DNA of 64,000 nt from Ranitomeya imitator. Its lineage: Eukaryota. The first letter of the stretch is position 1, and the number at the start of each line of letters is the position of its first letter. Below the pieces are notes generated by a model that worked only from the letters and a program-made list of their open reading frames with translations, ran no database searches and was not told where the DNA came from. Location of the stretch: NCBI RefSeq assembly GCF_032444005.1, contig NC_091288.1, positions 218,054,001-218,118,000 on the forward strand, in the 5' to 3' direction. Positions 1 to 14,400 of the stretch are shown here, in pieces. A program made the translations under genes and the position numbers.

Positions 1-1226
1 GATGACATAAGAGCAGACAAGAGTAGCCGGATGAATTCTGAAGTGGACCGGGATATACTTTCAGCCCAGATTCAGCCAAATGCTGCAAAGTTGATTGGAC
101 GGCGCTTCATAGTACAGATGGACAATGACCCCAAGCATACAGCCAAAGCTACCCAGGAGTTCATGAGTGCCAAAAAGTGGCACATTCTGCAATGGCCAAG
201 TCAATCTCCAGATCTAAACCCAATTGAGCATGCATTTCACTTGCTCAAATCCAGACTTAGGGTGCCGTCACACAGTGCAATTTTGATCGCTACGACGGCA
301 CGATTTGTGACGTTGCATCGTCGCTTAATTATCGTTTCAAACATCGTAGACTGCGGTCACACTACACGATGCACGGCGCTGAAGCGATAAATTCATGACG
401 TATTTGCGATGTAGAAGTCGTATGGGACAGTCGTACGGTCGTGTCACACACGACGATTCAGAGCAAATTTTGCATAATCTGTGCGTGACGTTGTTCACTG
501 GGGGCGTGTTGTGCTACTTGCTAGTGTGCTGATAGGCCAAAGGTTCTGTGCACACAATTGGTTGGAAAATTTGTCACCTGAGCGCTATTGTTCCCAATGC
601 CACCTCACTGCTTTCAAAATTTCCTTTCTTCACTTCGTACTTGGACACTTGGTGGACCTGGACATTGGAATTTTGTACTTCGCTGAATATACCACGCTTT
701 GCACCGCTGCTTCGAGGTATGTAAACCGCTTGGGCGTGGTGGATGGAACGCTGTATGGACGGCATGAGTGCTTCGTTCCACCGCTGAAGCGAAGCGGATG
801 GTACACTGTTGTGACTGGAGGGCTACAATGTGACAGATGGTACGCTGTTGTGACTGGTCGTGACTGGTGGGCTACAGCGTGGTAGATGGGACGCAGTTTG
901 GTCGGCATGACCGCTTCGTTCCGCCGCTGAAGCGATGCGGATGGTACGCTGTTGTGACTGCTTATGACCGGTTGTGTCTGTTGAGCTAGAGCGTGGCAGA
1001 TGGTACAATGTATGGTCACCATGAGCGCTTTGTGTGGCTGCTGTAGTGAAGCAGGCGGTACACTGTTTTGGGTTATGGTGGCCTATGGCGTGGCAGATGG
1101 AAGAAGCGATGGTAGGCATGAGTGCTTTGTGTGGCTGCTGTTGTTAAGCGTTTGACACACTGGCAAAAGTATTGTTTAAAGGACTCTTTGTCAACCGTGT
1201 AATTTTTTTTTATAATTATTTTTCAG

Positions 1227-2650
1227 ATGTCAAATCGTGTGGAGTTCATCAGGGATTTCATCGAGATTTATCAGTCTTTTCCCTGCCTCTGGAAAATAAA
1301 ATCTCCTGAGTATTGTAACAGGGAAAAGAGGAGGGAGGGTTACTTAAAGCTCATTGAGCTTTACAATCGTCATGCACCAGAAGAGGCAGCAAACGAAGCA
1401 GTTATTAAAAAGAAAATCCAGGCGCTCCGCACGGTGTGGAGGAAGGAGCTGAACAAGGTTCTTCAGACTACAAGGTCCGGAGCTTCCACTGAAGATGTTT
1501 ATGTGCCAAAACTTTGGTATTTTGAACATCTTAATTTTCTGAGGGACCAAGAGGTGCCACAGACTTCCACGTGTCTTCGCTTGTTGGCACCTGTGGAACC
1601 AATAGTTTCGGAGAACCACGCCGAGCAGGAGTCACAAGGGCAACAAGTAAGTAGCTCTTTGGACGAAAGTTCACCAATGTGTCCTATAATTACATAAATT
1701 TTCTCTGCATTTTATGTTTTATACTTCTGATTATCACATCAGTTTGAAGTTGTTACAAAAACATGTCCACATAAGTAACCCTGTCGCAGTAAAGTATTAT
1801 ATGGGGAACTTAATATGTATGAAATGGCGATATATCTAAACCATACCATCTAAGCAATATAGAAAATAGTATCGCTTCCAGCTGCAGATGTTTTCTTGTT
1901 GAGACTATTTAGACTATAAAATATTGGTCAGGTTCCCCTAGCAGTCAGAACAGTGTAGTTCAAAGTATTAAATAAAAGGGAGGGTTAAAGAATATTACTA
2001 AGCTTAAAATATATTATAATCTTTTTTTTTTACCTACTACGAATATATAGTTTGGATGCGGTTATGGTGGTACAACTTTTTGTTGCCGGGTTCATAACTT
2101 GTTTTTTTTTCCCCCCCCCCAGGATGACAGTGCGCAGGAGAGTACACTGGACTGTTCACAGGACTGCACGACAACTGATTTAGTGGAGGCTGCACCTGCC
2201 AGGACTCAATCGAGGCAAGGTCCAAGAAAACGGAAAGCCACCTCAGACGCCTCACATGAACTATTGAGCCTTGCAAAGAAGGTGTTGACAAGAAATGTTA
2301 GCCCTGCGTTGCAGGGGTTTGGACACTATGTGGTTGACAAACTGGCCAAAATGGACGACAACCAAAGAATACTAGCAGAGCGTCTGATTCTGGAAGCAGT
2401 GAACAGGGGTACAGATGGCGATTTGGACAAGAACACTTGTTTGGTCTCTTCCCGGCCAATACAGCGGACAGAGCCATCAAATTACAATGGTTGGTCACAG
2501 TGTCAGACATCGATGCGACACAATCCTCACGTTTCCCACTTCGGCCAGCCACCCCCTAATAACTCCTACACGCCAATACCGTCACATATGGCTTCGCCCA
2601 TCAGGCACCAAAGTTTTCAGCCGGAACAATCGTCGTATCATAATTTGTGA
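1227..2650 (+). CDS. Harbinger MADF/Myb-like DNA-binding partner protein, exons 1227-1646 and 2123-2650 (~315 aa)
   Basis: N-terminus FIRDFIEIYQSFPCLWKIKSPEYCNREKRREGYLKL...IKKKIQALRTVWRKEL fits the MADF pattern. Donor caa|gtaagt at 1646/1647 and acceptor ccccag|gat at 2122/2123 give an in-frame phase-0 join. C-terminal FGHYVVDKLAKMDDNQRILAERLILEAV is BESS-like. AATAAA at 2709. Confidence 0.85.
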
Positions 2651-2889
2651 TTTCCTAACTTCTTTTACATTCCTTTTTATTTTATTGTCTTGTTAAAATA
2701 ATGTTTCAAATAAAAGCTTTTATTAGAAATTCTATCACTACTTTTTGATTGGTGTGTCTCGATCACAGCACTGTATGAGGGCACAAATTAACGTAACAAA
2801 TTCATGTACAGTTAACTAAAAAAAAAAATCGAATGAAAGTTTAACAAAATCTTTTAATTGGAACAACAAAAAATGGATTATTGGCCCGC

Positions 2890-5481
2890 CTACAACTGCT
2901 GGCACATGTCCCGCAGCTTCTGCAGCTCCTCCATTGCCACATTGTGCTGCTCCTGAATACGCGCCATAGTGTGGATTAGCTTTTCTATGCCGGCTTCAAG
3001 ATCCTCCTTGTTGACAGTGACGAGAGCTGTGGGTCAAAAAACATAACATTAATAACACAGTAGTCTCCCGATGTGTCTTTGCTTCTGTGAAGGAAAAAAA
3101 AAAAAAACAGTCAGCATATAAGGGCAAAACTGACTTGGGGGGGGGGGGGGGGGGTGTTTGGGTTGGGGGTGAAAGAGTGGGCCTGCAACAAAATCAAAAT
3201 AACTTTATTGTGGGAACCTACTAGGATGTTGAGGCACGGAGGGCACTTCGGGATCTGAGTCTGTGTCGAATGCCTCGTGCTGTCGGCGGCGGCGCTGTCT
3301 CTTTGCCTCTGTGAAGGGAACAAAACAAAAAAAAGGTCTGTCAGCATATATGGCAACACTGGCTGCCGGGGGAGGGGGTGGGGGGGAAGAGGGGACCTGC
3401 AACTTAATCCAAATCACATAATTGTGGGAACCTACTAGGATCTGGAGGAGTAGACCCGGAGGGCACAGATGTAGAAGAGGCTGTGCGGGATGCCTCGTGG
3501 CGGCGGTGGTGCTGTGTCTTTGCCTCTGTGAAGGGAAAAAAAAAAAAAAAAGGTCTGTCAGCATATATGGCAACACTGGCTGCCGGGGGGGGGGGGGGAG
3601 GAGGGGACCTGCAACCAAATCCAAATCACATTATTGTGGGAACCTACTAGGATCAGTTGTCTTTGACCCGGAGGGCTCTGGGACTTCAGAGGCGGTGTGA
3701 GAAGCCTCGTCGCTACGGCGGCGCTGTCTCTTTGCCTCTGTGAAGGAAAAAAAAAGTTCGGTCAGCAGTTAGCTGTGCCACATAGTACTTTTCACCGTTC
3801 ATACTGTCCCATAGCTGTTGGACATAGTGGCTCTGCAACGTTCAAACTGTCCCATAGCTGTGGCACTGCAACGTTGAAACTGTCCCATAGGTGTGGCACA
3901 TAGTGGCTCTGCAACGTTCAAACTGTCCCATAACTGTGGCACATAGTGGCTCTGCAACGTTGAAACTGTCCCATAGCTGTGGCACATAGTGGCTCTGCAA
4001 CGTTCATACTGTCCCATAGCTGTTGGACATAGTGGCTCTGCAACGTTGAAACTGTCCCATAACTGTGGCACATAGTGGCTCTGCAACGTTCATACTGTCC
4101 CATAGCTGTGGCACATAGTGGCTCTGCAACGTTGAAACTGTCCCATAACTGTGGCACATAGTGGCTCTGCAACGTTCATACTGTCCCATAGCTGTGGCAC
4201 ATAGTGGCTCTGCAACGTTGAAACTGTCCCATAGGTGTGGCACATAGTGGCTCTGCAACGTTCATACTGTCCCATAGCTGTGGCACATAGTGGCTCTGCA
4301 ACGTTGAAACTGTCCCATAACTGTGGCACATAGTGGCTCTGCAACGTTCATACTGTCCCATAGCTGTGACACATAGTGGCTCTGCAACGTTGAAACTGTC
4401 CGATAGGTGTGGCACATAGTGGCTCTGCAACATTCATACTGTCCCATAGGTGTGGCACATAGTGGCTCTGCAACGTTCATACTGTCCCATAGCTGTGGCA
4501 CATAGTGGCTCTGCAACGTTCATACTGTCCCATAGCTGTGGCACATAGGGGCTCTGCAACGTTCAAACTGTTCCCATAGCTGTGACACATAGTGGCTCTG
4601 CAACGTTGAAACTGTCCGATAGGTGTGGCACATAGTGGCTCTGCAACATTCATACTGTCCCATAGGTGTGGCACATAGTGGCTCTGCAACGTTCATACTG
4701 TCCCATAGCTGTGGCACATAGTGGCTCTGCAACGTTCATACTGTCCCATAGCTGTGGCACATAGTGGCTCTGCAACGTTCATACTGTCCCATAGGTGTGG
4801 CACATAGTGGCTCTGCAACGTTCATACTGTCCCATAGCTGTGGCACATAGTGGCTCTGCAACGTTCATACTGTCCCATAGCTGTGGCACATAGTGGCTCT
4901 GCAACGTTCATACTGTCCCATAGCTGTGACACATAGTGGCTCTGCAACGTTCATACTGTCCCATAGCTGTGGCACATAGTGGCTCTGCAACGTTCATACT
5001 GTCCCATAGCTGTGGCACATAGGGGCTCTGCAACGTTCAAACTGTCCCATAGCTGTGACACATAGTGGCTCTGCAACGTTCAAACTGCCCCATAGCTGTG
5101 GCACATAGTGGCTCTGCAACGTTCATACTGTCCCATAGCTGTGACACATAGTGGCTCTGCAACGTTCAAACTGCCCCATAGCTGTGCCACATACTTTTGG
5201 GTACCTGAGTACTAACCTCTGCTAATCTCCTGGCGAAGCTCCTGCAGGCGCTCTGGGCTTTTCGACTTGAGATCGCCCCATTTTTTCACTATCTGGGCCT
5301 TGCTGCGCGTTATCCCAAACCGCTTCCTGAGGCCCTCAGACACCACACGGACAACTTCCTCCTTGTGCTGGTTGCGGTGCAGCACCATCCCTGTGGTTTC
5401 ATACTGCATCCTATCCATTGTTCCAATAAGGAACTTGAGCTCTGGGATGCCCATAGGTGGACCACGGCGACTGGCAGCCAT
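2890..5481 (-). CDS. Harbinger accessory gene A: Myb/SANT-like domain, repeated basic modules, C-terminal coiled coil (~222 aa). Exons 5481-5217, 3737-3648, 3525-3436, 3308-3222, 3026-2890
   Basis: Exon 1 MAASRRGPPMGIPELKFLIGTM...RFGITRSKAQIVKKWGDLKSK has the RS..Q..KKW.DLK signature of MSANTD/NAIF1-type domains. Donor G|gttagt. Three 87-90 nt phase 1-1 exons lie between ttcacag| and |gtaggt. The last exon TLVTVNKEDLEAGIEKLIHTMARIQEQHNVAMEELQKLRDMCQQL* is in frame. Total 669 nt, open. Confidence 0.75.
3775..5190. repeat. 43-bp tandem minisatellite (~33 copies) in intron 1 of accessory gene A
   Basis: Unit gtggcacatagtggctctgcaacgttcatactgtcccatagct. Alternating ttgaaa/ttcata variants give an 86-bp higher-order period around 3900-4400. 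Confidence 0.95.
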
Positions 5482-5763
5482 TATCACGATGTCAGGGGAC
5501 AAAAACAAGCTAGGGCAGGCACGCAGGAACGCTGTACGTCATCACGCCGTCATAGACCACGAGCGTACATTACGTGCCGCTCCGGCGTTATATAACGATC
5601 CTTCGAACGGCATTTACTATGTGCGTTCCTTTCGTAACGCTCAGTCGTCACAAATGTGACGCTGTTCATAAACGGCAACGCTATTGCGATGCCAATGGCG
5701 CGGCAGGACGGCGGAGCGCTGCTCCTCCTCTGGGCGTTGCTCTTCAGGGTCATTCCATCTAAA
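5482..5763. promoter_or_regulatory. Putative bidirectional promoter between accessory genes A and B
   Basis: 282-bp CpG-rich gap between two head-to-head ATGs (5481 on -, 5764 on +). Near-palindrome cgtcacaaatgtgacg at 5646-5661. Confidence 0.5.
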
Positions 5764-7646
5764 ATGGCGGCGAGAATGCGTTCTGCTCCTCTGGGGCAGC
5801 CAGAACTCCTTTTTTTTTATTTCCCAGATGGATGCCATGGATTACGAGGGTCTGGAGAGCCGCCCTGCCCACCCACACATCCACAAGCGGGAAGTGCTTG
5901 GCCACATAACAAGAATGATGGAGAGGAGGTTTGGCGTCTGCCGCAGTCAGCTTCAGCTGCGTAAAAAATGGGCTGACCTCCGCTATAAAACGCCACAAAT
6001 GTTTGCGGAGTTGCGTGCGGAGGCAAGGCGAGGCAAGTACTAGTATGGGGGGATTGGGAGATGCATGCTGTCAGGAGGGGGGGGTTTGGGAGGGAGGCTT
6101 GCGCTCATGGTTGCCAACTTCACCTCAAATGCATTAAAACACATGCCCCGTTTTTTAAAAATTTAGTTATTTTCCAAGCAGAATATGCGTTGTCCGTGAG
6201 AAAACTTGTCGGGTTCCCTAATCTCAACCACCATCTTGAAATTATTAAGATGTCCATAATTTTTACTTTCTCAATTTCCCATAAATATTAACGGAGGAGG
6301 TTGGCCTACTGATGAAATAATACGTTTTCCAAAGACAGGAAGACCATTGAACCCCAGAGCCCACAGACATGTCAGAGTATCGCACCCCTGTAAAGTGTGA
6401 TCTCGATTTTATGTTTGAGTATATTGTAAGCTTTGCTCTGCAGCACTCAACATTTGTGTGTAAACATTGTGATTCTTTACTTTAGGTGTAGAGAGACAGC
6501 GGCGGCGGCAAGTCAGACACACCATTGCCACCAGTACCCCATCTTCTGACACCAGTGGGAGCCCACAGTCCGGGACATCACGTAAGTTCACAATCATTTA
6601 TTGCATTTTTTTTAACATCACACGGGACATAACAGGGTAGCTGAAATATTTGAAGACATTACAGACGCAGTAATGACCCAGCGGCCTACCACACCTCCAC
6701 CATCTGTTGCGACCATGCACCCTCGCACCCCTGTGAAGTGTGATATAAATTTTATGTTTCAGTATATTGTTAGCTTTGATCTGCAGCACTCTACATGTGT
6801 TTTTAAAGATTGCGTTTGTTAACTTTCTGTGTAGAGAGACAGCGGCGGCAACAGGTACCTGCCATTGCCAGCAGCACCACAGCATCCACCACCAGCGGGA
6901 GCCCAGAGCCCGGGACGTCACGTAAGTTAACAATCATAGATTACAGTTTTTCAACTGCATACGGGACATAAGAGGGTAGCGGAAATATTTGAATACATTA
7001 CAGACGCAGTAATGACCCAGCGGCCTACCACGCCACCACCAGACAGCAGACGGCCTCGCACCCCTACACCACCCTCAACACCTCCCTTCCGACACTCCTC
7101 TTCCTCCCCCGGGTCGGCGGCATTCTCCCCAGAAGCTAACATACGTAAGTGACCAAAACAGCAAGCGCTTCCCAACGGCGTGTTCCATAGTTAACCAGAT
7201 CTGTTATAATTTCCTTTTACCTGCTGCAGCAGAGGCCAGATCGCTGGGATGGGACATTAGCAGCTCTGGTTCTGGCAATGAGGAACCGGCGTCCCTTCTC
7301 CGTAAGTATCAAGATAATGCGAGTGGTTTTCTGCTGGATGTCACCATAGACAACCAAAACTGTAAAATTTAATAAAATTTACATCGCCCTGTGGTGCCAG
7401 ACCAAATAGAAATTTACAACACAGAAAATTAGGTCCTGCCCCAGAGGTCGAGATGTATTTTCAGAGGAATCAACGTTGGTTCTCCAACCTCTTCTATCCA
7501 CAGAACCGCCCACCGTAAGAGAGCTCCTGGCGAGACAATTGCGACTGGAGCGGACAGCAGCGCTCCTGCAGCAGACAGCAGCGCTCCTCCAGAGTCAAGT
7601 GGAGCAGCAGGGCGTGACGCTGCGACACCTCTTGGGCCGGAGATAA
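5764..7646 (+). CDS. Harbinger accessory gene B: paralog of gene A (Myb/SANT-like, basic/Ser-Pro modules, coiled coil; ~279 aa core). Exons 5764-6032, 6492-6581, 6835-6921, 7004-7144, 7230-7301, 7465-7646; further small exons possible; +1 T in a homopolymer near 5810-5818
   Basis: Removing one T from a 9-T run gives MAARMRSAPLGQPELLFFISQMDAMDYE...RFGVCRSQLQLRKKWADLRYK, collinear with gene A. Donor is G|gcaagt (GC-AG consensus). Internal exons of 90, 87, 141 and 72 nt are all phase 1-1 with gtaagt donors. Last exon ...VRELLARQLRLERTAALLQQTAALLQSQVEQQGVTLRHLLGRR*. Confidence 0.7.
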
Positions 7647-7849
7647 TTTTTTTTTTTGGGGGGGGTTATGTTATATTTTGTTGTAAAATAATTTAAAACC
7701 AAGAAAGTGTTACAAAAAAACCAAAAATCTTCGCATTCTTTCTTTAATGTTTACCAAGCTATAAGGGTTAACAGCACCATTTTATAGGCATCACATTTAA
7801 AATTATTTAGAGAGGTTTATATGACAGCAAAGCAAAAAAAAAATTTTTT

Positions 7850-9574
7850 TTATACGGCGCGATCCTGCCAGGGTACAGCTCCAGAACCATTAAAGTACTG
7901 ACAGTATTTTTCGCGACAGTCCCTTGCATCGTCTGCCTGTCTGCCAGATCCAAGAGCTTGAAGAGCTGTAAAATTTTCAGGTTGTGTACGCCATTCCCCG
8001 GGCACAATATCTCCGGTTCGTGCGTCCACTGCATCAATAAACGAAGGAGGAGAATAGGAGCTCGTATCATGACGTCTCAGGAAATTATGGAGCACACAGC
8101 ATGCCAAAACCACAAAGTCTATAGTCGGCAGCTTCAAGTTGATAGCTGTGTGGAACACTCTAAACCGATTTGCCATAATCCCAAAGGCATTTTCAACCAC
8201 ACGACGGGCCCTCGACAACCGGTAATTAAAGATTCTGCGCTCCGGTGTGAGTGTTCTCTGTGCAAATGGCTTCAGCAAATGTGGATGAAGAGGGAAAGCT
8301 TCATCAGCGATGAAGACAAAATTTAGGTTTGCTTTTGTGTCTTCATTTAGTGGCAACAGCAGTTCATTGTTCCTCAAGCTTTCCCCAAATGAAGTGTGTT
8401 CAAAAACACCACCGTCGGAGACTCGACCATTCATGCCAACATCTACATCGACAAACTCATAGTTCGCATTGACAAGGGCCATGAGGATCACACTGAAATA
8501 TCCTTTGTAGTTGAAAAAGAAGGATCCAGAGTTGGCTGGTTGCGTGATGCGCACATGCTTTCCATCTAATGCACCACCGCAGTTTGGAAACTGCCACAGC
8601 TCATCAAAATCGGAAGCAATCCTCTTCCAGTCATCCGCCGTCTTGGGAAACTGCAAGATGAGAAGGAAACATGTACAAATTAGGTCAAATATATTATGCA
8701 CATACACTCTCATGTGCACATCCTACAGTGAATGAGGCGCAGTATGGATTAGTATAACAAAGTCAACAACACAGAGTATGCAGGCAGCCATTTTTTCAGA
8801 TGGCTTCGGTGACTCAGAGGGGGTGCTAAACAATATATCTAAATTATATAATCAATAAAATTACGTTGGGAGCAGCAAATAAAAGAAGGGTGGCGCAGGG
8901 TTGGAGCAGCACATATCAGAATGGAGCCGCAAAATGGTAGCAGCACATGTCAGAATGGAGGCGCAGGATCACAGCAGCACATGTCTGAATGGGGGCGCAG
9001 GATGGGAGCAGCACATGATAGGATGTAGAACATATACCAATAGAAATGCTCGCCATCAGGGCGTAGAACGGGTTCAATAGCTAGTATAATATATCGACAT
9101 AACACAGCAGCCAAAAAAATATAGTAGTACCTCCATATAATGCCTTAAGCTCTGCACAATGGCCTCGCATGTCTCCGGAATCACAACGCTCAGGAAAGGT
9201 CTGGAAACAGCTGCGGAAAACTGCAAATCCTGAAGAGACCTTCCTGTTGCCAGGAAGCGCAGTGTCACCGCCAACCTTTCCTCCACGGGCACGGCTGCAC
9301 GCATCGGCGTATCACACCTTTGTATGAGTGGCGTAACAGCAGACAGTATTATCTTGAAGGATTCCTCGGACATCCGAAGGTAGTTTCGGAAATCATGAGG
9401 GTTATTGTCACGTAACTCTCTTATGAGACCCATGTGTGACAATGTGGATCTTTTCTGCAGCCAGCTCCGGGTCCACATGCGACGTTTTCGTTTAGGACGT
9501 CTCTCCTCTTGGAGACGTGCTGCCTCAAACACCAGGGCAGCAGCAACAACAGAACTCTCATCGGAAGTGAGCAT
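7850..9574 (-). CDS. Harbinger (HARBI1-like, DDE_Tnp_4-type) transposase, exons 9574-9131 and 8650-7850 (~414 aa), uninterrupted
   Basis: Motifs FRNYLRMSEESF, VEERLAVTLRFLATG, GALDGKH, DGGVF, ADEAFPL, RRVVENAFG, VLACCVLHNF. Donor gag|gtacta and acceptor ttgcag|ttt are in frame. No stops or frameshifts. Confidence 0.93.
8860..9084 (+). mobile_element. Helitron-like 3' end fragment inside the transposase intron (5' boundary uncertain)
   Basis: gcagcacatg...aggatggga repeats followed by ...aaatgctcgccatcagggcgtagaacgggttcaatagCTAG|t, nearly identical to the CTAG-terminated end at 35770-35838. Confidence 0.55.
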
Positions 9575-10829
9575 AGTTCCTAAAAAGAAAACAAACGTAC
9601 AATAAATACACGTGCTTACAAAACAATGTTCTGACCATTGATCTAATAACTATATATGTTACTACTGGTATTAAATGGGGCAGTCAACCATCTCGATCTG
9701 TAAAAGGATTAATTAATTGGGCCACGCAACAGCTGTGTACCTGAGGTTCTCAGGCCTACCCTACTCTCCATAAAGGAACAATCGACCACGCTACAGCGTT
9801 TATCCCCGTTGAAGCGCAACATATGCTACGCTGTAGCGTTATACATACCTTTTGCGGTAAAAGTCTAGTAGTTAAAGGTCCAGGGAATCCAGCGAATTTA
9901 GGAGTTCTGTTCACAGCACGTGCTACAGAGAGAAATGAATAGCGCGCTCGAGAGCTCCGGTTTTATCCGCTGGGAACAATAGTCCTTTGTCGAATGAGCG
10001 CACAGTATTGTACCGCCCAATCAGCACACGGGAGGTGGAGAATTCAGCGCTCCTACATAGCCAGCTCCTCCGCCCTTTACATCGTATACAATATCGTGCA
10101 CACCTTTGTCACACCATGCGATCATGCCGCCACAGCGGGACACTGGACGACGAAAGAAAGTTTCAAACGATCTGCTACGACGTACGATTCACAGCGGGGT
10201 CCCTGATCGCAGGAGCGTGTCACACGCTGCGATAGCGTACCTATATCGCTCGAACGTCACAAATCGTGCCGTCGTAGCGATCAAAATTGCACTGTGTGAC
10301 GGTACCTTTAAGACGGAAAGACCCACAAACAAGCAAGACCTGAAGGCTGCGGCTGTAAAGGCCTGGCAAAGCATTAAGAAGGAGGAAACCCAGCGTTTGG
10401 TGATGTCCATGGGTTCCAGACTTAAGGCAGTGATTGCCTCCAAAGGATTTGCAACAAAATATTGAAAATAAAAATATTTTGTTTGGGTTATGTTTATTTG
10501 TCCAATTACTTTTGACCTCCTAAAATGTGGAGTGTTTGTAAAGAAATGTGTACAATTCCTACATTTTCTATCAGATATTTTTGTTCAACCCTTCAAATTA
10601 AACGTTACAATCTGCACTTGAATTCTGTTGTAGAGGTTTCATTTCAAATCCAATGTGGTGGCATGCAGAGCCCAACTCGCGAAAATTGTGTCACTGTCCA
10701 AATATTTCTGGCCCTAACTGTATCTGTAGCCCTATATACCGGCCACGCACTGACTCCAGGATTGTAGACCCCTGTGATGATGGTTAGTTGACACACCGCG
10801 ATCTAACATGTCCCTTGTGTCACATTATT

Positions 10830-11455: not shown

Positions 11456-14400
11456 TCAGTACTTCCGCTGGCGAGGAAAGATGGCGGATGAGCGCTTTGG
11501 GGTAGGCACAGAGTCCGGGTCCATATCGAACAGATCGCGGCCGGTCTTCAGGATCTGCTCCTCGATCTTCTTGTGTCGCTTCATGTCGGACAGCACCTTG
11601 TCCATCCGAGCCTCTCTCTTCTGACTGCGGGTCGAGCTCCCTGGCAAACAGAAAATAAAGAGTTAAATATGTATGTTTACACGCAGACACCAGAAGACCA
11701 CCCTGTGGCCGGACAGCTCATCCAAGGCTGTGGCTACTACTCCCTCCACCATGCTTTACACTGCAGTCCTGCCCTATCAGTGTATGGCTATACACTGCTG
11801 TACTAACAGGCGCTCCCCTCCCCCATCACTTACCGGGCGTTCGCCGCCTGTCAATCAATGAGTTTTTCGGAGTGATAGGTTCATCATTGAAATCGAACTC
11901 TGTGGGGATGGAAGGCCTGCGGGGGAAAAAGAGACAGTCAGCTCCGCTATCATGTAATTCATCATTCATCGTCTGGACGAAGCAATGATCACACAGCTGA
12001 AGGTTCGTTACAATGGATCCAACCACTGAAGACGCTGCATCTACAGCAGTGAAACGTGTCGGGAAGGAGCAGAGGCCGTAAAGTTATTAACCCCTTGCCT
12101 CCGCAGCGCTTTTGTATTTTTTCCTCACCTTCATTTCCAGGACCCGTAGCTTTTGTTTTTAATTCTTCCATTCGCACAGACATACAAGGGCTCGTATTTT
12201 GGGAATCACTCTTCTTTTTCCCCCCATGTAAAATGCTAAAAAAAAAATCCATCTGCAGAGAAATAGTCTGTAACTCCATTATAGTTACTCTGGGTTTCGT
12301 TTTTGCTGCAGTAAAAGTCACCAGGTAGCCCCGTTCCCCGGTCGGTACGATTACACCCGCAGCCAAACACTTATTACAATTTAGTGAGAAAACAACAAGT
12401 TGCCATTTTCCACTTTCTCAGACCCTCTATTTTCCCGTCTGTATCGCCGGATCGAGGCTCAGTTTGTTTCCGCTATTTACTGAGACCACTTTCCCGCAGC
12501 GACACCTGCTATGGTGCAGACTCAGCTCCTGGTCCCGCAGCGACACCTGGTACAGTGCAGGCTCAGCTACCGACCCCACAGCGACACCTGGTACGGCGCA
12601 GGCTCAGCTACCGACCCCGCAGCGACACCTGGTACAGCGCAGGCTCAGCTCCTGATCCCGCAGCGACACTTGGTACAGCGCAGGCTCAGCTCCTGATCCC
12701 GCAGCGACACCTGGTACAGCGCAGGCTCAGCTCATGATCCCGCAGCGACACCTGGTACAGCGCAGGCTCAGCTCATGATCCCGCAGCGACACCTGGTACA
12801 GCGCATGCTCAGCTACTGACGCCGCAGCGACACCTGGTACAGCGCAGGCTCAGCTCCTGATCCAGCAGAAACACCTGGTACAGCGCAGGCTCAGCTCATG
12901 ATCCCGCAGCGACACCTGGTACAGCGCAGGCTCAGCTCATGATCCCGCAGCGACACCTGGTACAGCGCATGCTCAGCTACTGACGCCGCAGCGACACCTG
13001 GTACAGCGCAGGCTCAGCTCCTGATCCAGCAGAAACACCTGGTACAGCGCAGGCTCAGCTACCGACCCCGCAGCGACACCTGGTACAGCGCAGGCTCAGC
13101 TCCTGATCCCGCAGCGACACCTGGTACAGCGCATGCTCAGCTACCGACCCCGCAGCGACACCTGGTACAGCGCAGGCTCAGCTCCTGATCCCGCAGCGAC
13201 CCTTGGTACAGCGCAGGCTCAGCTCCTGATCCCGCAGCGACACCTGGTACAGCGCAGGCTCAGCTCCTGATCCCGCAGCGACACCTGGTACAGCGCAGGC
13301 TCAGCTCATGATCCCGCAGCGACACCTGGTACAGCGCAGGCTCAGCTCATGATCCCGCAGCGACACCTGGTACAGCGCATGCTCAGCTACTGACGCCGCA
13401 GCGACACCTGGTACAGCGCAGGCTCAGCTCCTGATCCAGCAGAAACACCTGGTACAGCGCAGGCTCAGCTCATGATCCCGCAGCGACACCTGGTACAGCG
13501 CAGGCTCAGCTCATGATCCCGCAGCGACACCTGGTACAGCGCATGCTCAGCTACTGACGCCGCAGCGACACCTGGTACAGCGCAGGCTCAGCTCCTGATC
13601 CAGCAGAAACACCTGGTACAGCGCAGGCTCAGCTACCGACCCCGCAGCGACACCTGGTACAGCGCAGGCTCAGCTCCTGATCCCGCAGCGACACCTGGTA
13701 CAGCGCATGCTCAGCTACCGACCCCGCAGCGACACCTGGTACAGCGCAGGCTCAGCTCCTGATCCCGCAGCGACCCTTGGTACAGCGCAGGCTCAGCTCC
13801 TGATCCCGCAGCGACACCTGGTACAGCGCAGGCTCAGCTCCTGATCCCGCAGCGACACCTGGTACAGCGCAGGCTCAGCTCATGATCCCGCAGCGACACC
13901 TGGTACAGCGCAGGCTCAGCTCATGATCCCGCAGCGACACCTGGTACAGCGCATGCTCAGCTACTGACGCCGCAGCGACACCTGGTACAGCGCAGGCTCA
14001 GCTCCTGATCCAGCAGAAACACCTGGTACAGCGCAGGCTCAGCTCATGATCCCGCAGCGACACCTGGTACAGCGCAGGCTCAGCTCATGATCCCGCAGCG
14101 ACACCTGGTACAGCGCATGCTCAGCTACTGACGCCGCAGCGACACCTGGTACAGCGCAGGCTCAGCTCCTGATCCAGCAGAAACATCTGGTACAGCGCAG
14201 GCTCAGCTACCGACCCCGCAGCGACACCTGGTACAGCGCAGGCTCAGCTCCTGATCCCGCAGCGACACCTGGTACAGCGCATGCTCAGCTACCGACCCCG
14301 CAGCGACACCTGGTACAGCGCAGGCTCAGCTACCGACCCCGCAGCGACACCTGGTACAGCGCACGCTCAGCTACCGACCCCGCAGCGACACCTGGTACAG

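Follow-up and report, generated by a model that had tools for sequence, protein, structure and literature searches.

How many genes can a PIF/Harbinger transposon carry, and what might a third and a fourth of them be doing there? The question is raised by a 64,000-nucleotide stretch of the genome of the frog Ranitomeya imitator (assembly GCF_032444005.1, contig NC_091288.1, forward strand positions 218,054,001 to 218,118,000), referred to here as the window, in which a PIF/Harbinger element holds a divergent pair of genes between its MADF gene and its transposase gene. We call these genes A (minus strand, 2890-5481) and B (plus strand, 5764-7646). Harbingers are described as two-gene elements that encode a transposase and a Myb-like/MADF protein (PMC9710019, PMC13668399, PMC9392472), and the Myb-like protein of Harbinger3_DR (Sinzelle et al. 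2008), as PMC9710019 and PMC9392472 refer to it, is such a second gene. Among the host genes of vertebrates, NAIF1, MSANTD1-4 and the N-terminus of TSNARE1 descend from Myb-like genes of Harbingers (PMC9392472). The two-gene view also underlies models of co-domestication, namely those for HARBI1/NAIF1, the MSANTD genes and the plant ALP/HDP pairs.

An earlier note, written by a model that saw only the letters of the window and a list of its open reading frames, had described A and B as paralogous Myb/SANT and coiled-coil genes that arose by an old inverted duplication within a transposon and were kept under selection. The analysis reported here leads us to a reading that we hold with a probability of roughly 70%: A and B form a diverged pair of copies of X, our name for the single accessory gene of this type in related three-gene Harbingers, which belongs to a frog-specific PIF/Harbinger lineage, and both copies are kept by selection. 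On this reading a frog Harbinger lineage holds a second, unrelated Myb/SANT-like gene class beside MADF. We searched the full-text literature without meeting any account of a third or fourth Harbinger gene of the X kind.

Results

The element spans 260-10307 (10,048 bp) and is bounded by terminal inverted repeats (TIRs) of 54 nt at 261-314 and 10253-10306 that are 98% complementary; the trinucleotide TTA at 257-259 and again at 10308-10310 forms the 3-bp TWA target site duplication (TSD) of a PIF/Harbinger element. Its minus strand encodes a Harbinger transposase of the DDE_Tnp_4 family (7853-8719 and 9077-9574; PF13359 on 7853-8719, E 9.4e-33, 113.5 bits against a cut-off of 24.8), and its plus strand encodes a MADF protein (1227-1694; MADF_DNA_bdg, E 3.3e-16, 59.8 bits against a cut-off of 22). 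Because MADF fills the canonical role of the second gene, A and B are the third and fourth genes of an element with the order Tnp> <B A> <MADF, in which Tnp is the transposase. The earlier placement of the pair inside a transposon is thus borne out by the TIRs, the TSD and the two genes around the pair. Two more full copies of the element in R. imitator, L001 and L005, show the same gene order, and the TIRs match in L001.

The two accessory genes are alike in several features of their architecture. The peptides encoded by their first exons are 42% identical over 74 amino acids (tblastn within the window, E 4e-15), and the 18 N-terminal residues add another 10 identities, giving about 40 identities in about 90 positions, close to the 39 of 89 that had been counted by hand; the conserved aromatic residues Y27, F55 and W68 are common to both. 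As also proposed, a phase-1 intron interrupts the two genes at homologous codons at the end of exon 1 (5217/5216 in A, 6032/6033 in B), and the first exons are followed by phase 1-1 mini-exons, three in A (90, 90 and 87 nt) and two in B (6486-6581 and 6835-6921), every one of which starts with a basic motif of the RQRRR type. Finally, heptad periodicity was found in both last exons, where the hydrophobic fraction at positions a and d is 0.85 in A (reached by 3 of 2000 shuffles) and 0.77 in B (38 of 2000) in a home-made shuffling test and not with a trained predictor; the heptad-rich final exons of the earlier description therefore lie beyond what shuffling yields.

Gene A consists of five exons with canonical GT-AG introns and is open throughout its 222 codons. 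Exon 1 (5217-5481) starts with the ATG at 5481-5479, comprises 88 codons plus 1 nt that encode the Myb/SANT-like trihelix domain, and ends at the donor AGAG/GTTAGT at 5217/5216. The junction of exon 2 (3648-3737, 90 nt, beginning EAKRQRRRS) is the same as in the NCBI models P0001 and P0008 of sister copies. Exon 3 (3436-3525, 90 nt) and exon 4 (3222-3308, 87 nt, beginning EAKRQRRRRQHE) complete the set of three mini-exons, which are units of a 212-bp tandem repeat present in 2.8 copies. The last exon (2890-3026) encodes the heptad-rich helix and ends with the stop codon TAG at 2892-2890, just downstream of which lies an ATTAAA signal. Intron 1 is filled by a 43-bp minisatellite (3770-5193; 33 copies, 92% matches) that also occurs in the same intron of L001 (10330-12395); it therefore belongs to the family and was not inserted later.

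Gene B consists of six exons, two more than had been proposed. Exon 1 (5764-6032, ATG at 5764) encodes the Myb/SANT-like domain and is frameshifted in the window copy: across a run of nine T residues (T9, 5810-5818) the frame of the ATG and the Myb frame, which runs from 5819, differ by +1. In contigs of four public runs the same site reads T8, at all of the depth in runs X1 and X7, at most of it in X14 and at 41% in the DNA-like run X2, so the frameshift is private to the window copy or to its assembly and B is intact in the family. As assembled, B in the window copy is disabled by this single extra T. Exon 2 (6486-6581) is a mini-exon beginning GVERQRRRQ, with an in-frame alternative acceptor 6 nt downstream, and exon 3 (6835-6921) is a mini-exon of 87 nt that is skipped in some transcripts; the two are units of a longer duplication. 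The two exons missing from the earlier description are exon 4 (7004-7144), a proline/serine-rich linker of 141 nt that is open and 6 nt longer in L001, and exon 5 (7230-7301), of 72 nt, whose acceptor lies at 7221, 7230 or 7233 depending on the copy, always in frame. The last exon (7504-7646) carries leucine-zipper-like heptads, includes a 21-bp repeat of 2.3 copies at 7545-7592, and ends with the stop codon TAA at 7644-7646.

Two claims of the earlier note need to be divided between the genes. Open reading frames are found in A but not in exon 1 of B, for which the alignment then given implicitly reads T8; and intact splice sites of the canonical type are found in A, whereas the donor of B intron 1 (CGAG/GCAAGT at 6032/6033) is of the GC-AG type, not GT, and is kept as such in L001 and L005. 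GCAAGT donors occur in B intron 1 of all three copies and also in B intron 5 of L001, an unusual concentration for a small gene. We also considered an alternative splice of B intron 1, from a GT donor at 6036/6037 to an acceptor at 6495/6496, which keeps the frame; its acceptor is poor and it has no read support, and we list it as a possibility only.

The other introns of B are spliced. The evidence consists of contigs, not raw reads, mapped over 5195-7700 only, a range beyond which, past the satellite, lie the 3' exons of gene A; the contigs come from the RNA-like runs X1, X7 and X14, which represent three studies, and from X2. Joints with GT and AG at their borders connect 6581 to 6835 (X1, X7) and 7301 to 7504 (X1, X7); a further joint, from 6581 to 7004, skips exon 3 (X1), and another runs from 6581 to 6665 (X7). 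At intron 3, contigs of X7 have reciprocal loose ends at 6921 and 7004, each of which carries the sequence of the other. The joints of intron 4 are specific to the copy and in frame (7144 to 7236 with TGT between, and 7145 to 7222), with the donor at 7144/7145 in X1, X7 and X14. None of the predicted joints of B was found in the DNA-like run X2. Introns 2 to 5 of B are therefore spliced in three RNA-like runs, with borders as predicted.

A profile of A and B was searched with HMMER against 1.84 billion representative sequences, which gave 80 hits. Twenty of these were looked up, 17 had a species in the name, and all 17 were anuran, from the genera Ranitomeya, Anomaloglossus, Xenopus, Bufo, Lithobates, Hyperolius, Engystomops and Eleutherodactylus. 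Each of them is either uncharacterised or misnamed, and the full-length relatives measure 233-334 amino acids. A-type proteins also occur in R. variabilis. Both A and B are multi-copy and bounded by TIRs, and A/B sequence occurs at high depth in many small runs. Single X genes were found beside Harbinger genes in R. imitator itself (L003, Tnp> X> <MADF), in Anomaloglossus (L002, Tnp> X> <MADF; L004, Tnp> X> followed by a second, partial element), in Xenopus laevis (L006, Tnp> <MADF X>) and in Hyperolius (L007, MADF beside X). The presence of X in both Xenopus and neobatrachian frogs means that the gene is probably old, and X appears from these comparisons to be a long-standing passenger of the frog Harbinger lineage.

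A maximum-likelihood tree of the domain gathers the A copies in one clade (support 100/99) and the B copies in another (97/87); the two are sisters, with a support of 93/73 that is only moderate, and the closest clade to the pair is that of the dendrobatoid X genes (99/95), the stem of A being long (1.25). On our reading A retains the position and orientation of the ancestor and B is the inverted copy, and the pair goes back to an old, whole-gene inverted duplication that has been seen so far only in Ranitomeya. The old inverted duplication inferred earlier thus agrees with the tree, which places A and B as sisters next to the X genes, present in single copy. RQRRR mini-exons are present in A and B and not in X proteins; they therefore arose before the duplication. 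We picture the gene and its history as follows. The product of X consists of an N-terminal Myb/SANT-like trihelix, a variable low-complexity linker, which in A and B is made up of tandemly duplicated RQRRR mini-exons that resemble nuclear-localisation signals, and a C-terminal heptad helix; in a Ranitomeya sub-lineage the whole of X would have been duplicated in inverted orientation to yield Tnp> <B A> <MADF.

A different origin would make A, B and X host genes that the transposon picked up by transduplication and carries passively. Many host transcription factors have a domain of this class, and host-like relatives do exist, among them a Bufo protein (P0011) in which a KRAB box is combined with two X-type domains. 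Against this stand the genomic neighbourhoods, in that X lies beside the transposase, MADF or both at six of the seven loci examined, from five frog genera, and L001, the seventh, has A and B beside both, as well as the position of the window-family genes inside the TIRs and a level of selection, given below, that is comparable to that on the transposase and MADF; moreover, searches of the protein collections brought up no host homologue, single-copy and syntenic, that is more closely related than the copies of the element. We therefore regard passive capture as very improbable. The narrower case foreseen earlier, in which this copy alone would have captured a host gene, is excluded by the presence of the pair in L001 and L005 and by the travel of this gene type with Harbinger genes in several frogs.

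Three relatives deserve separate mention. In the Xenopus laevis element (L006, 6740-11065) X is apparently intronless, and the element lies within an intron of a glycogen phosphorylase gene. P0011 and P0012, from Bufo bufo / B. gargarizans, carry two Myb/SANT-like domains of the X type behind a KRAB box and are likely to be host genes derived from the X transposon gene. In the NCBI gene models P0099 and P0100, two isoforms of LOC143807995 of R. variabilis, an acidic/basic N-terminus like that of nucleolin is fused with sequence of the mini-exon and last exon of the A type, which suggests that 3' exons of A have been spliced into a host transcript at that locus.

What kind of domain do the first exons encode? 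At E <= 0.01, PF13873 (Myb_DNA-bind_5) is hit by 17 of 34 family members and PF13837 (Myb_DNA-bind_4) by 15 of 34, and the frog relative P0011 passes PF13873 (44 bits against 21.7); an atlas built with a language model leans to the same Myb-like reading. An AlphaFold2 (AF2) model of A exon 1, with a mean predicted confidence (pLDDT) of 80, contains the three helices of such a domain (residues 12-24, 36-55 and 61-73) and a fourth at 76-87. A structural search with this model (VIA-align; 48,161 PDB representatives) placed first the DNA-binding domain of Zeste (PDB 5cqq; Z 7.9, root-mean-square deviation 2.6 Å over 72 residues) and next plant GT-1 from Arabidopsis (PDB 2jmw; Z 6.4 over 67 residues), scores that are middling and within the chance reach of a small helical model; TRF1, Myb and SANT domains follow. 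With identities of 12-19%, Zeste and GT-1 resemble the model of A in fold only, a likeness that does not speak for a shared function or for orthology. Foldseek against the PDB returned no match to the same model at E <= 0.001, and a sequence search of the PDB with the family profile returned nothing relevant. Taken together, the family hits, the model and the structural matches agree with the trihelix/Myb-SANT-like domain named earlier, and the domain appears to be a divergent member of that class, the modelled structure counting as agreement with the sequence and not as proof.

Selection on the pair was assessed from the ratio of non-synonymous to synonymous substitution rates (dN/dS) between the window and L001. 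The ratio is 0.18 for A exon 1 (dS 0.36), 0.50 for A exon 5 (dS 0.58), 0.31 for B exon 1 (dS 0.72) and 0.22 for B exon 6 (dS 0.24), compared with 0.14 for MADF (dS 0.37) and 0.16-0.21 for the transposase (dS 0.10-0.12). Three of the four A/B exons therefore overlap the range of the two canonical genes, and A exon 5 lies higher. Between the window and a contig of X1, exon 1 shows 11 differences, of which 10 fall at third codon positions (P ~1e-4) and 8 are synonymous and 3 non-synonymous. From these patterns, both A and B appear to be under purifying selection among element lineages, and the ratios, which are not near 1, sustain the earlier claim that the pair is kept under selection. Decay does occur in individual copies, as the frameshift in B of the window, a 46-nt deletion in B exon 4 of L005 and a stop codon in the transposase of L001 illustrate.

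This decay is central to another explanation, in which the duplication left B as a by-product now in decay, the one working gene is A, the copy that has the ancestral position and orientation, and the apparent conservation of B reflects recent copying. Besides the frameshift and the deletion just mentioned, the first exon of B is far more diverged between copies than that of A (63% against 86% amino acid identity), its intron 1 has the GC donor and showed no splice, and no B-type protein was found in the protein collections, which is why B has never been annotated. The dS values of 0.24-0.72 at low dN/dS in B exons 1 and 6 mean, however, that the divergence is not that of recent copying. All six exons of B are open in L001, with length differences that are multiples of 3 throughout (-3, 0, +6, 0, +6); all 5 differences between B and an expressed X1 contig fall at third positions, 4 of them synonymous; and introns 2 to 5 are spliced in frame even where the acceptors are specific to the copy. 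We consider it distinctly unlikely that B is such a by-product.

The reading of A and B as two selected copies of a transposon gene must nevertheless be set against a number of observations that weigh against it, the lack of any known B-type protein among them. No joint across B intron 1 was seen in the contigs of the RNA-like runs; these contigs continue past the GC donor and represent a variant of the copy with an intron 1 that is shorter by 383 nt, and if intron 1 is retained a stop follows after three codons. The RNA nature of the three runs is itself guessed, and the evidence for splicing of gene A consists of the exon junctions in the NCBI models of sister copies. On the window itself Pfam gives Myb_DNA-bind_4 17.8 bits for A (E 0.0045) and 14.8 bits for B against a cut-off of 27, so membership of both in the Myb/SANT class is assigned by transitive and structural evidence only, and the structural scores are the middling ones reported above. 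To these may be added the moderate support of the node that unites A and B, and the circumstance that DNA binding, dimerisation and a part in transposition are properties that we infer.

Discussion

The system closest to A and B is the Myb-like protein of Harbinger3_DR. Like A and B, it is encoded beside a DDE transposase within a Harbinger, has a three-helix domain of the Myb/SANT type with conserved aromatic residues and basic stretches that suggest nuclear import, and finds short repeated subterminal motifs available as putative sites. A functional partner of the Harbinger3_DR type would bind subterminal repeats and the N-terminus of the transposase and carry the transposase into the nucleus. 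Unlike Harbinger3_DR, the element described here already has a MADF gene, to which the X family shows no profile similarity; A and B also have a C-terminal heptad helix and tandem mini-exons. The idea that X is a recent duplicate of MADF was ruled out in the same comparison, as alignment of the X family with the element's MADF by hhalign revealed no similarity. NAIF1, MSANTD1-4 and TSNARE1 belong to the same broad class (Myb_DNA-bind_5 / Myb_DNA-bind_4), a likeness seen at the level of the domain class. Genes of the NAIF1/MSANTD type are single-copy and syntenic across jawed vertebrates, whereas A and B are multi-copy, TIR-bounded and, as far as searched, confined to frogs; they do not show the single-copy locus free of TIRs and the synteny that mark a domesticated host gene.

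The region between the genes offers a first hint of what the pair might do. A and B share a spacer of 282 bp (5482-5763), presumably a bidirectional promoter, of which a core of 175 bp is 91% identical to L001, against an identity of only 75% in exon 1 of B. A perfect 14-nt palindrome, GTCACAAATGTGAC (5647-5660), occupies the centre of the spacer and is kept in L001 (at 9821) and in L005 (at 9883); upstream of X in the three-gene relatives it does not occur. The spacer also holds TTATATAA at about 5587-5594. The half-site of the palindrome is the motif that clusters at the ends of the element. GTCACAC has 16 sites in the window, and 6 of them, at 267, 356, 443, 10108, 10219 and 10294, lie no more than 200 bp from the element ends, three in each subterminal region at a spacing of roughly 90-110 nt. 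A k-mer count found no 9- to 12-mers repeated in both ends. The GTCACAC clusters and the GTCACAAATGTGAC palindrome are candidate protein-binding sites.

These elements can be joined into a tentative mechanism. The A and B proteins would be nuclear and would dimerise through the C-terminal helix; they would bind the DNA of the element, with GTCACA(C) at the ends and the palindrome as candidate sites; and they would act as co-factors or regulators of transposition alongside MADF. A complex prediction for the C-terminal helices (A 2893-3024 with B 7506-7643) came out at 0.03, where the mark is 0.34, and gives no verdict, neither for nor against binding.

The same observations can be read without any need for A and B in transposition, if the two proteins regulate or restrain the element, either as autoregulators of the bidirectional promoter or as dominant-negative competitors of MADF. 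The canonical two-gene set of transposase and MADF is already complete in this element (PMC9710019, PMC13668399), and the transposase carries a basic stretch of its own, RRPKRKRR, so that a helper for import may be unnecessary. The palindrome, which repeats the end motif, is perfect, central in the shared promoter and kept in three copies, and a site of this type suits a dimeric DNA binder. On the other side, Xenopus, Anomaloglossus and Ranitomeya have kept X together with both the transposase and MADF, and Hyperolius has it next to MADF, a pattern that fits a co-factor equally well. A purely regulatory or restraining role is, in our judgement, possible but rather doubtful.

A more specific proposal would have A and B form a heterodimer that recognises GTCACA half-sites both in the palindrome of its own promoter and in the arrays at the element ends, and so couples autoregulation with end recognition or synapsis alongside MADF. 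We offer this as a speculation with little chance of being right in full; if true, the heterodimer would be a third functional layer that is undescribed for PIF/Harbinger elements, for which a transposase and a single Myb-like protein are held to suffice. Read as two selected copies of X, the pair also provides a natural system for the role of extra DNA-binding partners of a cut-and-paste transposon, for gene duplication and sub-functionalisation inside a mobile element, and for the origin of frog host genes with an X domain, such as the Bufo KRAB fusions and the exonised A exons in the R. variabilis model.

Additional observations

The Harbinger element sits within the open reading frame of a Tc1/mariner transposase, which it splits between window positions 1-259 and 10311-10465 (...HLLKSRL / KTERPTNKQ...). 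The flanks rejoin to a single Tc1 frame (...ccagacTTAagacgg), and the Harbinger was therefore inserted into an older Tc1 copy, as a nested insertion. No N letters occur in the 64-kb window.

Outside the Harbinger element, a 41-bp tandem repeat of at least 37 copies (91% matches) extends over 12492-14000 and runs on; as far as looked, it is unrelated to the 43-bp satellite of gene A.

The two halves of the element differ in their likeness to L001: the transposase half (7824-10306) is 94% identical to it, and the half that holds B, A and MADF (258-7824) is 83-85% identical. This gap suggests recombination between subfamilies or differing histories of the two halves.

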